This document shows, in pieces, positions 5,322 through 42,600 of a DNA stretch of 64,000 nt. Origin of the DNA: Ranitomeya imitator (Eukaryota). The position numbers were made by a program, and so were the translations under genes. Under the pieces are notes generated by a model. The model had not been told where the DNA came from, did no database searches, and saw only the letters and a program-made list of their open reading frames with translations. The stretch is taken from contig NC_091285.1 in the NCBI RefSeq assembly GCF_032444005.1, positions 11,532,001 through 11,596,000 on the forward strand, given 5' to 3'. Position 1 is the first letter of the stretch. Each line of letters opens with the position of its first letter.

Positions 5322-8300
5322 TTAGTAGAGACCCAGGGTCCTGAGCATCATCCTCTCCACGCCGGTCATCTGATAACCATTCTTGTTAGCTGGAAATGTA
5401 AAGCATGGCATTAGAAATGTGTAAATCCTGCGCTAAGCCTCGATATCTAGGACAGCGCGGTGTGAACCAATGTGGCCGACATTGCTGCTCCTACAGAGGT
5501 CACCACTTACATGTTCATCATGGAACGTCTGCCAATTAACTGCTAAGTTAGGAAGAATTCCCAGAATGCACTGAATTAAATATGACCCCGCGGGGGCGGC
5601 GTACAGTGGTGTGATGTCATCAGGAGGCGGAGCTTGTACCACAACTATATATCATCTAGACTACATCAGGTCTATATATATGACCGGAAGAGATTAATGT
5701 CTTACCGTATGCAGAGCTGCTGAATCCCCACCTGTAGAGGGAGAGACACAGGATTAGATACACAGCTCATCTGCAGTATCACACAGGATAGGATTAGATA
5801 CACAGCTCATCTGCTGTATCACACAGGATAGGATTAGATACACAGCTCATCTGCTGTATCACACAGGATAGGATTAGATACACAGCTCATCTGCTGTATC
5901 ACACAGGATAGGATTAGATACACAGCTCATCTGCTGTATCACACAGGATAGGATTAGATACACAGCTCATCTGCTGTATCACACAGGATAGGATTAGATA
6001 CACAGCTCATCTGCTGTATCACACAGGATAGGATTAGATACACAGCTCATCTGCTGTATCACACAGGATAGGATTAGATACACAGCTCATCTGCTGTATC
6101 ACACAGGATAGGATTAGATACACAGCTCATCTGCTGTATCACACAGGATAGGATTAGATACAGCAGCTCAGCAAGCCACAAGTCCTATACTAACCAGTCC
6201 CAGCATCCGTTGGGGTTGGACAAGTTGGACTTGGCCTGAGGATACAGGATGATGAAGTTGTTCAGATCGGCCACCTGGTTGTACCCGGTGTATCTGGCAT
6301 ATTTGTCACCAAGTTTTTCCCTGTAAAACAAAAAGAAATGTGTCTTGTAATTATTCATCATCTGCACCGAAAACTGCTGTGATACCACAACTCCCAGCAT
6401 CCCCTAAAGGGGATGTGTCATCAAAAATCTAACTATTGTTTAGATGATGTGATGTCACAGCTCACCTCCTCCTCCTGTACAATGACTGATAACACCGCTA
6501 TATACAGTAGATAACACAGGATCCACCATTCACAATAGATGATGTCACAGCTCACCTCCTCCTCCTGTACAATGACTGATAACACCTCTATATACAGTAG
6601 ATAACACAGGATCCACCATTCACAATAGGTGATGTCACAGCTCACCTCCTCCTCCTGTACAATGACTGATAACACCGCTATATACAGTAGATAACACAGG
6701 ATCCACCATTCACAATAGATGATGTCACAGCTCACCTCCTCCTCCTGTACAATGACTGATAACACCTCTATATACAGTAGATAACACAGGATCCACCATA
6801 CACAATAGGTGATATCACAGCTCACCTCCTCCTCCTGTACAATGACTGATAACGCCTCTATATACAGTAGATAACAGAGGATCCACCATTCACAATAGAT
6901 GATGTCACAGCTCACCTCCTCCTCCTGTACAATGACTGATAACGCCTCTATATACAGTAGATAACACAGGATCCACCATTCACAATAGGTGATATCACAG
7001 CTCACCTCCTCCTCCTGTACAATGACTGATAACGCCTCTATATACAGTAGATAACACAGGATCCACCATTCACAATAGGTGATGTCACAGCTCACCTCCT
7101 CCTCCTCCTATACAATCACTGATAACACCTCTACATACAGTAGATAACACAGGATCCACCATTCACAATAGGTGATGTCACAGCTCACCTCCTCCTCCTG
7201 TACAATGACTGATAACACCTCTATATACAGTAGATAACACAGGATCCACCATTCACAATAGGTGATATCACAACTCACCTCCTCCTCCTGTACAATGACT
7301 GACAACACCTCTATATACAGTAGATAACACAGGATCCACCATTCACAATAGGTGATGTCACAGCTCACCTCCTCCTCCTGTACAATGACTCATAACACCT
7401 CTATATACAGTAGATAACACAGGATCCACCATTCACAATAGGTGATGTCACAGCTCACCTCCTCCTCCTGTACAATGACTCATAACACCTCTATATACAG
7501 TAGATAACACAGGATCCACCATTCACAATAGGTGATGTCACAGCTCACCTCCTCCTCCTGTACAATGACTGATAACACTTCTATATACAGTAGATAACAC
7601 AGGATCCATCATTCACAATAGGTGATGTCACAGCTCACCTCCTCCTGTACAATGACTGATAACACCTCTATATACAGTAGATAACACAGGATAGGTGATG
7701 TCACAGCTCACCTCCTCCTCCTGTAATGACTGATAACTCCTCTATATACAGTAGGTGACATTGGATCCATCGTTCGGCATAGATGATCACAGCTCACCTC
7801 CTCCCCTTCCCTTCACAATCCCCTTTGCCCAGATTACAGTTTGCCCAGTTTATACTTGGATACAAACATGGGGTCTCCGTCAGTCTTTTGCTTCTAATGT
7901 CACAATGAATAACATGAAGTACGAGTCCAACAAATCCTAAAGTCAGGGCTGTTCTCACCTTCCTTGCAGGCAGCCGTGGAAGACAATATGGAGTTTGCAT
8001 TCTGCAAAAAAAAAATACAAATCACTTAGAAGAAAGAATGGTAAAAAAGCTCAAACATCCCTGGTTATGGTTTAGGGGCAGAGGGACACAACTTGACCCT
8101 CACTTGTGCTGACCCTCGTGCTTCTTGGATCGCGGTTGCAGGCAGGAACTTCTATAATCAGGGTCCATTCTTTCATGCTATGCCCAACTCATTTATTTAA
8201 CGTGATTTTATAAAAAATGAGAACTTAGAAAACTAGAAAGTAGACCCTCAACCCATCCTACTTGCCATTTTTTTTAATAGTTTTTCTCATAATTTCAACC

Positions 8301-39666: not shown

Positions 39667-42600
39667 TCACTGGCTGACACGATGGGAGGTGCAGACCGTT
39701 TGCGTTGAGAGCTGCTGTTCGAGCTTCCGTGACGCTGAGGGGGAAAGAAAACCACGAGATCTTTATTAATCAGTGGATCCTAGGCATAAAAGTTATTATG
39801 AAGTAACAGATCGCCTTAAAATAAAAAGTTCTGCAACTTTCTAATCTACTAAAAGCAACAGGATAGCTGTAAAATGGAGGATAACGCTGAGCATACTACA
39901 TAAGGCTACTTTCACACTAGCAATCCGTCACAATGCGTCGTTTTGCAGAAAAAACGCATCCTGCAAAAGTGCTTGCAGGATGCGTTTTTTCCCCATAGAC
40001 TTGTATTGACGACGCATTTGCGACGGATTGCCACACGTCGCATCCGTCGAGCGACGGATGCGTCGTGCTTTGGCGGACCGTCGGGAGCAAAAAACGCTAC
40101 ATGTAACATTTTTTGTTCCTGACGGACCGCTTTTTCTGACCGCGCATGCGCGGCCGGAACTCCGCCCCCACCTCCCCGCACCTCACAATGGGGCAGCGGA
40201 TGCGCCGGAGAAATGCATCCGCTGCCTCCATTGTGCAATGCGTTAAACGCTAGCGTCGGAATCTCTCCCCGACGCATTGCGATGGGGAGATTCCGACGCT
40301 AGTGTGAAAGAAGCCTCACATGTTCAGGGGCTCCGGGTAACTGAGCTCTTGTTGGCAGCCATGAGCTCATCCTGCCGCCTCCGGTCACTCACCGGCAGCG
40401 TTCTTCCTCTGCTCTGACAACGTGTAGATCTCCTGCAGCTGCTTCTTCTGGTCATTGCTGAGCGAGGCAGTCAGGGAGTGATACCAGGCTGGGTCTCTGC
40501 TCTGTACACCTGTGAGTGAGAGCGGCTCAGGATTTCTGCTCTGAGGTTCTGAACGATGCAAACTGCACAGGAATGCAGGCAACTCACCCAACAAGGAGTC
40601 TGTGAAGAGTTGATACTCATCCAGGGCCCCATGACAGTCCAGGGGAGTGCTGAACGCCTCCAGTGCAGTCTCTTCTAAGGCTTCGTCGTCCCAGTCCTCA
40701 TCGTCATCCTCCTCGTCATTCTCTCCGGCATTCTCCTGCATGGCCTGGCCGCTGGACTCCTCCTCGTCACTCGGGATCTCCTCTAACGGAAATATTAGAA
40801 TTGGCGTTGCGAAGCAGCACGAAGCGGGTCACGGGCCTTGCGAAGCAGCACGAAGCGGGTCACGGGCCTTGCGAAGCAGCACGAAGCGGGTCACGGGCCT
40901 TGCGAAGCAGCACGAAGCGGGTCACGGGCCTTGCGAAGCAGCACGAAGCGGGTCACGGGCCTTGCGAAGCAGCACGAAGCAGCACGAAGCGGGTCACGGG
41001 CCTTGCGAAGCGGGTCACGGGCACTGCGAAGCAGCATGCTGCAGGCTTATGACCAATTTTTCCTAATTTCTCGTTCCCTTCATTCTGATGTATTTACCGT
41101 TCTCCTCGGTTTCGGTTTTGTTGGCTCTGGACGACGTCTGCTTTTCCGGATGGTCCCGGTGAGCACGCACTTGCTTCAGTCCGAGGAACAGCAGGAGAAT
41201 TGAAGGCACGATGACGGAGGCCACGGCACTCACCGCAGCAGGTCTACCGGGAAGCTCCATGAGGATGCTGAGGCCGATTATACACATCTTCCGGTCGTGC
41301 AGCCTGCAGGTGAGTAAGGCGGTTAAGTCACAAAATGTAAGGCTGTCCCCTTCTGTATCCCACCTGTCGACGACTCGGCAGTCTCCATCACTCCCATAGA
41401 CATCAATTAAGAGGTCCAGGAACCCCAGGGTGGGAGCACTTACCCCAGGAAGCAGTCCGTGTCGTTGACCCACTGATTGATGAACTGCGCAGTGATCGGC
41501 TCCGAGCTGTGGGGAAATCGGATCTGCTCCAGGGTGTTCAGGAGCAGCGCCGGATTGTAGTACAGGGAGGCGATGGCCACCTGGAGGCACATGGTGCGCA
41601 GCTCGCTGGACTTTACGCCTCGCGTTAAACGCTCCAGGACCGCCTCCACGAAGAGTGGGATACACTGAGGGAAAACAGTGACAACTCCTGGGTCAGCGTC
41701 CGTCATAGTGGAGAGACGCCATAGGCCCAATCATAGACCTCGCCTAATTCTGCAGGGGGAAGTCAGTACTGAATGTGACCCCCTTTCTGGCCTCGGATCA
41801 TTACATAATTCTAGAAGATCCAGAAAAAAACAAAAACATAATTGCTAAATCCGGGAACAACGCCATCGTTGTGTGTGTGACCGTGTCAGGAATTGCAGCT
41901 CAGCCCAAATTACAGAAAGGTGTTTTGTAGGATTGAAGGTCGTGATTCCTGGGACCCCCCATGTCTGATTCAGACCCTTTTAAATGGAGCGAGGACGATC
42001 AGCTCTACCTCCGCTAGGCTTGGGGTCCCAGAGATCGGATCCCCCCCAAAAAATTTAGCACTTTCAATCTCCTGAAACCCCTTAAACGAATCTTTTAAGC
42101 TATTCTTATGTTGACTCCCACCCAAAATTTCAACAGCATCCCATACATCAGTTGTCTAACCGCTGCCACCAATCACTGGCCTCAAAAGTCATGCAGCGAA
42201 CATTAGAGTTGACGATTGGCAGGATGCTAGCCCAGCAGACATGTTGCTAGTCCAGGGCCACCAGACAGAGCCCTGCCAATTTCCTCATACCTACGGCATC
42301 CCTGACAACTTTACAGGCCCGTGGAGTGACGTCACACGTGAATCGTGTTGCCATGTAGTGACGTCACACTTGGCCTAGTAAAATGAGAACTGGCTCTGGG
42401 GAGCAGGAGTCCAGTTCGGCAGCCATGGACAACGTACATGGCCGCCAGCCCATACAGGACACGTCCGCCATGAGGCTAGTGATCGGCTGCAGCAGTCAGA
42501 TGACTAGTAATGAGAAGCTGCCACTTCCGGTACTGGCGGGGACCAGGAGAGCGCCAGCTCTGGAGTTGCAGGGACTTCAAAAGGTGAACCTACACTTAAT

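Follow-up and report, generated by a model that had tools for sequence, protein, structure and literature searches.

Two tandem polyhydroxyalkanoate depolymerase-like genes beside an importin gene in the frog Ranitomeya imitator: a very probable case of vertical inheritance within animals

A stretch of 64,000 nucleotides from the frog Ranitomeya imitator (NCBI RefSeq assembly GCF_032444005.1, contig NC_091285.1, positions 11,532,001 to 11,596,000), referred to below as the window, was analysed with regard to the origin of two genes located on its minus strand. Gene A (12675..5322) and gene B (37424..22882) are tandem paralogues. Judging from the encoded residues, each of them specifies a putative secreted alpha/beta-hydrolase, namely a type-2 (circularly permuted) polyhydroxyalkanoate (PHA) depolymerase with an intact Ser-Asp-His triad; enzymes of this kind are abbreviated here as PHADs. 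In an earlier note on this DNA, two origins were proposed for the locus, either an ancient animal gene that had been lost in amniotes or an old horizontal acquisition that had gained introns, and it was stated that the sequence alone could not distinguish between them.

The paralogous exon series was spotted by comparing stop-free segments from both halves of the region, and the exons, among them two micro-exons (33 and 26 nt), were placed with frog proteins from the databases. The joined window proteins were used only for local alignment, tree construction, identity values and the ratio of nonsynonymous to synonymous substitution rates (dN/dS); database searches were performed with single exons or with database orthologues. 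Gene A was found to consist of 11 coding exons and 10 introns, all of the GT-AG type, and the same was true of gene B. The exon lengths are 61, 120, 198, 95 (A) or 92 (B), 114 (A) or 111 (B), 33, 109, 43, 126, 26 and 68 nt. Both open frames are intact and encode proteins of 330 aa (A) and 328 aa (B), which are 70% identical to each other.

The spliced model of gene A extends from the ATG at 12675 to the stop codon at 5324-5322, and its A-type product is 93% identical to the Anomaloglossus protein P0171. Exon 1 (12615..12675) encodes a signal peptide, judged by eye, with the sequence MKAFIILLSLVGLCYG, followed by QS. The lipase box GLSSG with the codon of the predicted catalytic Ser35 (12461-12459) is located in exon 2 (12383..12502), the codon of Asp121 (12089-12087) in exon 3 (12071..12268) and the codon of His156 (11485-11483) in exon 4 (11477..11571). 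These are followed by exon 5 (11187..11300), the 33-nt micro-exon 6 (11064..11096; KPSSGAAFTGQ), exon 7 (10311..10419), exon 8 with the FHGC oxyanion-hole region (7959..8001), exon 9 with NPNGCWDW (6195..6320), the 26-nt micro-exon 10 (5706..5731; WGFSSSAY) and the coding part of exon 11 with the stop (5322..5389).

Six junctions of this model were seen in spliced contigs from public sequencing runs. Of the words sampled from the 7.35-kb stretch of gene A, 12-14% were present in the runs, a fraction close to the exonic share of this stretch. Contigs of 1.1-1.25 kb (runs X1, X5 and X6; located on 5310-11309) showed no mismatch in the listed exon pieces, and their joints fell exactly at six boundaries of gene A: 5389|5706, 5731|6195, 6320|7959, 8001|10311, 10419|11064 and 11096|11187. 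The ends at these joints were CT..AC as read, which corresponds to GT..AG on the minus strand. Exons 6, 8, 9, 10 and 11 were contained in the contigs, and the joints 10419|11064 and 11096|11187 mark the ends of exons 7 and 5, respectively, that face exon 6. The read depth over intron 7 was zero. A fourth run, which was from a different species, showed the same splicing of gene A with few substitutions. An alternative in-frame acceptor AG of exon 7, at 10455, was rejected because it was absent from the contigs, which use 10419. In intron 8 of gene A, a minisatellite of approximately 0.9 kb (6433-7368) gives rise to long artefactual open reading frames (ORFs), and repeat-derived run contigs pile up there (bins 6310-7709).

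Gene B extends from the ATG at 37424 to the stop at 22882, and its B-type product is 88% identical to the Anomaloglossus protein P0179. Exon 1 (37364..37424) encodes a signal peptide (by eye) followed by QS, exon 2 (35393..35512) contains GISSG with the Ser35 codon at 35471-35469, exon 3 (35083..35280) contains the Asp121 codon at 35101-35099, and exon 4 (32944..33035) contains the His155 codon at 32952-32950. Next are exon 5 (32442..32552), the 33-nt micro-exon 6 (32291..32323), exon 7 (31997..32105), exon 8 (31611..31653) and exon 9 (31014..31139). Exon 9 is the final exon on the side of a neighbouring importin gene, called IPO8 below, before the sole N run in the window, an assembly gap of 170 N at 26016..26185. 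The gap lies inside intron 9 (31013..23180), at distances of 4.8 kb from exon 9 and 2.8 kb from exon 10, and touches no coding frame. On its gene A side are the 26-nt micro-exon 10 (23154..23179; WGYTGLVY) and the coding part of exon 11 with the stop, which is B-type by identity (22882..22949). The flanks of the gap are low-complexity or repeat DNA, and minisatellites occur inside intron 9 of gene B as well as inside intron 8 of gene A. Within intron 9, a long simple repeat coding for Glu/Arg or Ser/Pro (23300-24400) ends near micro-exon 10, and a repeat family of approximately six copies (26900-30000; ORF motif MGSLVGG.YCLGT) is located between the gap and exon 9.

The presence of a gap inside gene B could be taken as a sign of an assembly artefact, in which foreign DNA had been scaffolded beside IPO8 or exons 10-11 had been misjoined over the gap. 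The probability of such an artefact is considered negligible. The sequence from 26186 to 64000 is free of N; consequently, exons 1-9 of gene B, the importin gene and a caprin gene are on one contig. Exons 10-11 on the other side of the gap have the right order and strand and were 92-95% identical to B orthologues versus 64-68% to A orthologues. Moreover, exons 9 and 10 meet in phase 2, and splicing keeps the frame open to the stop. In Anomaloglossus, matching exons of 126, 26 and 65 nt were found within 2.8 kb of gap-free sequence, where exon 9 is separated from the next exons by 2.4 kb. A matching importin-PHAD neighbourhood is also present in Xenopus tropicalis. The earlier note had described ten spliceosomal introns, host transposable elements within them and contiguity with IPO8. 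The first statement is true of each gene, the second is borne out by a remnant of a Tc1/mariner-type transposase in intron 1 of gene B (36440..37141, minus strand; HTH_Tnp_Tc3_2, E 2e-25), and the third holds for exons 1-9 of gene B, which share their gap-free contig with the importin gene. The conclusion of that note that simple microbial contamination was not involved is likewise upheld by the introns, the intronic transposon, the importin contig, the Xenopus neighbourhood and the spliced contigs.

The nature of the encoded enzyme was deduced from profile and structure matches. Single exons matched the NCBIfam family NF050059 (type-2 extracellular short-chain-length PHA depolymerase) at profile positions 9-44, 43-109 and 234-280 with E values from 4e-12 to 1e-30, and window exons also matched the poly(3-hydroxybutyrate) (PHB) depolymerase of Penicillium funiculosum (PDB 2D80); the designation "microbial-type enzyme" given previously was therefore appropriate. 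A Pfam search with single exons yielded nothing beyond a sub-threshold Esterase_PHB match. The orthologues P0171, P0172 and P0158, whose identity to genes A and B is 86-93%, scored 359, 361 and 345 bits, respectively, against NF050059 over profile positions 9-303/305, the curated cut-off being 280 bits. P0172 matched 2D80 over residues 23-318 with an E value of 2e-52.

The Ser, Asp and His of the triad, HGC and GCWDW were invariant in an alignment of 14 sequences from frog to bacteria, and both window genes have them (S35, D121, H156 and HGC254 in gene A; S35, D121, H155 and HGC252 in gene B). The triad and oxyanion residues align with the corresponding residues of 2D80. In both genes, the domain order is permuted, with the G-x-S-x-G box N-terminal and the oxyanion/HGC region C-terminal. 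The N-termini of A and B look like signal peptides by eye, with a charged beginning, then a hydrophobic core and, ahead of the probable cleavage site, small residues. The proteins stop 20-25 residues past GCWDWWG and are thus single-domain, with no C-terminal linker or substrate-binding domain. The dN/dS ratio of gene B versus its Anomaloglossus B orthologue was 0.063 (267 codons), a value that indicates strong purifying selection on this sequence pair.

For the comparison of intron positions, annotated proteins were threaded exactly through their genomic loci, and the introns were mapped onto one alignment by column and phase. All ten introns of genes A and B were found at the same position and in the same phase in Xenopus laevis, X. 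tropicalis, lamprey and the starfish Patiria. The limpet Patella and the sponge Amphimedon each shared nine of their own nine introns with the frog genes, and the amphipod Hyalella shared six of eight. Amphioxus has the same series of approximately 11 exon blocks according to tblastn, its introns being placed only approximately since the locus differs from the protein P0352. The exon-intron structure of PHAD is conserved from sponge to frog. Outside animals, two of the four intron positions (column and phase) of the dictyostelid Heterostelium were common with animal PHADs, which hints that some PHAD introns predate animals. A second PHAD-sized gene is located just upstream of the one in Heterostelium album (locus L009, gene 5001-6267).

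The phylogeny of the family was studied with a quick tree of 103 rows and a careful tree of 60 rows; in the latter, support is given as ultrafast bootstrap/SH-aLRT (the SH-like approximate likelihood ratio test), with an asterisk for strongly supported branches. The 60-row set omits six bacterial rows that stood out in the quick tree by long end branches or odd composition (L013, L068, L046, L052, L039 and L062), redundant frogs, molluscs, echinoderms and Burkholderiales, as well as Bacteriovorax and a sequence from the amphipod Hirondellea. In the 60-row tree, vertebrates (100/99*), amphibians (98/90*), frogs (100/99*) and Bilateria (99/91*) were recovered, as was a group of animals plus one unnamed EukProt sequence (98/92*). 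Vertebrates formed a clade nested inside Metazoa in which lamprey, salamanders and frogs followed the species order. In the 103-row quick tree, all bacteria were on one side of a 99* branch. The Hirondellea gigas sequence P0016, named "polyhydroxybutyrate depolymerase", grouped in the quick tree with the jakobid Andalucia (96*), apart from the other arthropods; this placement may reflect protist contamination of the transcriptome from which the sequence came.

A horizontal transfer from a bacterium or fungus into the lineage of amphibians or of vertebrates, with ten introns acquired later, is an explanation that the family would readily suggest. It is best known from bacteria and fungi, the frog proteins are still 38-47% identical to enzymes of Burkholderiales, and the gene is missing from most vertebrates, the kind of scattered distribution that is often taken to indicate transfer. 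Relatives with 38-47% identity to the frog protein occur in at least 590 bacterial genomes, and because the corresponding value for invertebrates is approximately 50%, identity alone hardly separates the two groups. The intron positions and phases do separate them: lamprey and starfish have all ten in common with the frog genes, and limpet and sponge have nine apiece, a pattern that independent gain cannot yield. In addition, vertebrates nest within animals in the species order, and a clade of vertebrates plus bacteria was rejected by the approximately unbiased (AU) test (delta lnL 46.3, p 0.0023). A transfer to vertebrates is therefore regarded as very improbable.

Considering that the introns are shared with invertebrates, that vertebrates are nested in animals and that the AU test rejected the union of vertebrates with bacteria, vertical inheritance was concluded. 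The locus very probably represents two tandem, functional copies of the animal PHAD gene, a type-2 PHA depolymerase gene passed on by descent. The phylogeny and the comparison of introns with invertebrates that had been proposed in the earlier note thus yielded shared positions and monophyly, which speaks against a recent horizontal transfer. The first of the two origins in that note is accordingly favoured, and the second is disfavoured for frogs, for vertebrates and for animals. Its view that the origins are indistinguishable is correct for the sequence by itself and no longer applies once comparative data are added.

A deeper event would be compatible with vertical inheritance in animals. 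The whole eukaryotic PHAD clade could stem from one very old transfer from a bacterium to a pre-animal eukaryote, with vertical descent afterwards. Bacteria are by far the most diverse holders of the family (at least 590 genomes), eukaryotic holders are mostly bacterivores (dictyostelids, ciliates and the jakobid), and eukaryotes form one clade versus bacteria, with 99* in the 103-row quick tree and 86/98 in the 60-row tree. On the other hand, the tree is unrooted, and a single eukaryote clade is equally predicted by descent from the first eukaryote; the Heterostelium introns common with animals point to an old eukaryotic history; and no donor lineage stands out. Such a pre-animal transfer is a serious possibility, albeit on balance an unlikely one.

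The distribution of the gene was also studied. Annotated PHADs were found in approximately 20 frog genera, the newt Lissotriton, the axolotl, two lampreys, amphioxus, hemichordates, echinoderms, many molluscs, amphipods, a springtail, a millipede, Capitella and two sponges, and outside animals in dictyostelids, Tetrahymena and a jakobid. When a newt protein was used as the query, the vertebrates among the best 120 matches were frogs, salamanders and lampreys only, followed by invertebrates at approximately 50% identity. No PHAD of jawed fishes, caecilians or amniotes was found among the best 120 matches in two word-seeded searches of annotated proteins, genomes not being searched. Because an orthologue in these groups would be expected to outrank the invertebrate matches at approximately 50%, their annotated proteins appear to lack PHAD.

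The frog sequences formed two clades, A and B, each with members from Bombina, pipoids and neobatrachians, and therefore the A/B duplication predates most or all crown frogs. Gene A of the window was nearest to the A sequences of Anomaloglossus and Ranitomeya, and gene B was nearest to the Anomaloglossus B sequence. According to the proposed history, the gene would have descended from the vertebrate stem, as represented by lamprey, to amphibians; a tandem duplication no later than the base of crown frogs would have produced the A and B types; and PHAD would have been lost in jawed fishes, caecilians and amniotes. Tandem PHAD arrays were seen in other lineages as well, with two genes in amphioxus and three in Patiria, compared with two or three in frogs, and this suggests repeated local duplication.

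The neighbour of the pair is a gene of the IPO7/8 family (40385..53112, minus strand; IBN_N at 52861-53112; last coding exon 40385-40741). The 3' end of its coding sequence is 3 kb upstream of gene B on the same strand, and this adjacency is inside one gap-free contig. Its 3' exons have 66-75% identity with the orthologous exons of an X. tropicalis importin gene (IBN_N, Cse1 and TPR_IPO11) located ahead of the PHAD P0319; in that species, the PHAD gene follows the importin gene (IBN_N/Cse1) at a distance of 4.9 kb on the same strand. In X. laevis, two PHAD genes are followed by a TMTC-type gene. The importin gene was named IPO8 from its neighbours, because a caprin/C1q gene lies near the Anomaloglossus orthologue, a TMTC-type gene follows the X. 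laevis pair, and the human gene order is TMTC1-IPO8-CAPRIN2. In frogs, the PHAD pair sits between IPO8 and the TMTC-type gene (TMTC1).

In Anomaloglossus (L090:1-10029), no importin exons were found within 8.4 kb on the upstream side of gene B, a region that includes an N run at 5837-6036. The 5' end of the annotated caprin/C1q gene model of this species abuts PHAD, which reflects either a mis-modelled gene or a spacing other than that in the window. No importin neighbour was found within 10 kb of the lamprey and amphioxus PHAD loci; therefore, the linkage to IPO8 is shown for frogs only.

Several observations weigh against the proposed explanation or parts of it. Relative to IPO8, genes A and B are arranged differently in the window (importin, B, A) and in Xenopus (importin, A in X. 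tropicalis and A, B, TMTC-type gene in X. laevis); a simple inversion does not account for this difference, because all the genes are on one strand. The deep nodes of a tree built from a single gene with 330 columns are weak, as the 86/98 support for eukaryote monophyly illustrates. In the 60-row tree, one Woeseiaceae sequence from a metagenome-assembled genome falls among protists, and amphioxus groups with molluscs, not with vertebrates. The continuity of gene B across the gap is deduced from the exons on its two sides. That the public runs are RNA is a guess, the intron-free contigs and the zero intron coverage being as from mRNA. The absence of PHAD from other vertebrates rests on annotated proteins, and unannotated genes or pseudogene remnants could exist. 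Finally, the substrate of the frog enzyme is deduced from assays of non-vertebrate orthologues.

On the basis of these assays, the predicted secreted enzyme would hydrolyse the ester bonds of PHB and its copolymer with hydroxyvalerate (PHBV) to hydroxyalkanoate monomers or oligomers, probably in the gut of an animal swallowing microbe-rich material. It was also considered that the gene had been inherited vertically and that the vertebrate enzyme had come to act on a different ester, for example on other polyesters, cutin-like material or lipids. Besides the restriction of the assays to non-vertebrate PHADs, such a shift would be in line with the retention of two or three diverged copies in frogs (70% identity), which may signal subfunctionalisation, and with the carnivory of adult frogs and larval salamanders. 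The triad, oxyanion and substrate regions are nevertheless conserved with the assayed sponge enzyme and 2D80, purifying selection is strong, and the orthologues score above a curated equivalog-type cut-off. A change of substrate is thus judged improbable, and hydrolysis of PHB and PHBV remains the preferred prediction.

Other features of the window are repeats. ORFs resembling those of retroelements are located at 453-2041, downstream of gene A, and at 18344-19840, between A and B; they contain a reverse-transcriptase-like stretch and a possible integrase/RNase H stretch, and Pfam gave no match for the two pieces tried. Many short-tandem-repeat copies in the introns of the importin gene (43400-58450) produce recurring ORF artefacts on both strands.

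The closest known relatives of genes A and B are the frog proteins named "poly(3-hydroxybutyrate) depolymerase-like" in RefSeq, which are direct orthologues: P0171 and P0179 of Anomaloglossus baeobatrachus, P0158 of Leptodactylus, LOC120932811-13 of Rana temporaria and LOC121401407 of Xenopus. The nearest of them (93% for A and 88% for B) have the same 11-exon structure and differ in species. The Amphimedon queenslandica enzyme P0383 resembles the frog proteins in being a single-domain secreted type-2 enzyme with the triad and oxyanion motifs, in belonging to the metazoan clade and in its nine introns; its identity to the frog genes is 44-46%. The sponge enzyme has been assayed, whereas the function of the frog enzymes is predicted from sequence. 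The window genes belong to the animal PHAD clade both by their grouping in the tree and by their ancestral exon-intron structure.

The P. funiculosum enzyme (2D80/2D81) is likewise homologous over its full length, single-domain and permuted, with the Ser box first and the oxyanion region last. It differs from the frog proteins in being fungal and in having an insertion before NPNGCWDW, and Zeidler et al. (2026, PMC13642032) place it outside the animal-protist clade. Bacterial NF050059 enzymes (from Variovorax, Acidovorax, Massilia and others) have the catalytic domain in common with the frog proteins at 38-47% identity. Many bacterial reading frames are 400-700 aa long, consistent with linker and substrate-binding domains, whereas the frog proteins end at the catalytic domain. 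Furthermore, unlike the frog genes, the bacterial genes are without introns and are on the opposite side of the 103-row quick tree.

The PHAD family and its animal ancestry were already known, and RefSeq names the frog genes. In Zeidler et al. (2026, Nat Ecol Evol, PMC13642032), 195 PHADs are reported from 66 animal species in nine phyla, including Chordata, and the presence of PHAD in the metazoan ancestor is deduced, a conclusion that the present intron and tree comparisons confirm independently. It is also reported there that recombinant enzymes from a sponge, an earthworm and a springtail hydrolyse PHB and PHB/PHV in vitro, and the ten exons of the Olavius gene are taken as proof of eukaryotic origin. 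No literature on a frog or Xenopus PHAD was found beyond that article. Relative to its main text, the present analysis adds the conservation of introns from sponge to frog, the distribution in lampreys and amphibians, the location between IPO8 and TMTC, and the tandem A/B pair with its differing order.

Among vertebrates, PHAD may have been kept only in lampreys, frogs and salamanders, with independent losses in cartilaginous and ray-finned fishes, caecilians and amniotes and perhaps in lungfish and coelacanth. It is suggested, quite tentatively and as a rather doubtful proposal, that this retention may track a larva feeding on microbes or detritus (ammocoete or tadpole), in which a larval gut enzyme would unlock bacterial PHA, and that the A and B genes of frogs may be split by stage or tissue. 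As to the family itself, the microbial-looking enzyme gene of a vertebrate is, at this locus, very probably an old animal gene and not a product of transfer. It may serve as a worked example of intron positions deciding the origin of a gene when its identity to bacterial relatives (45%) nearly matches that to invertebrate relatives (50%).

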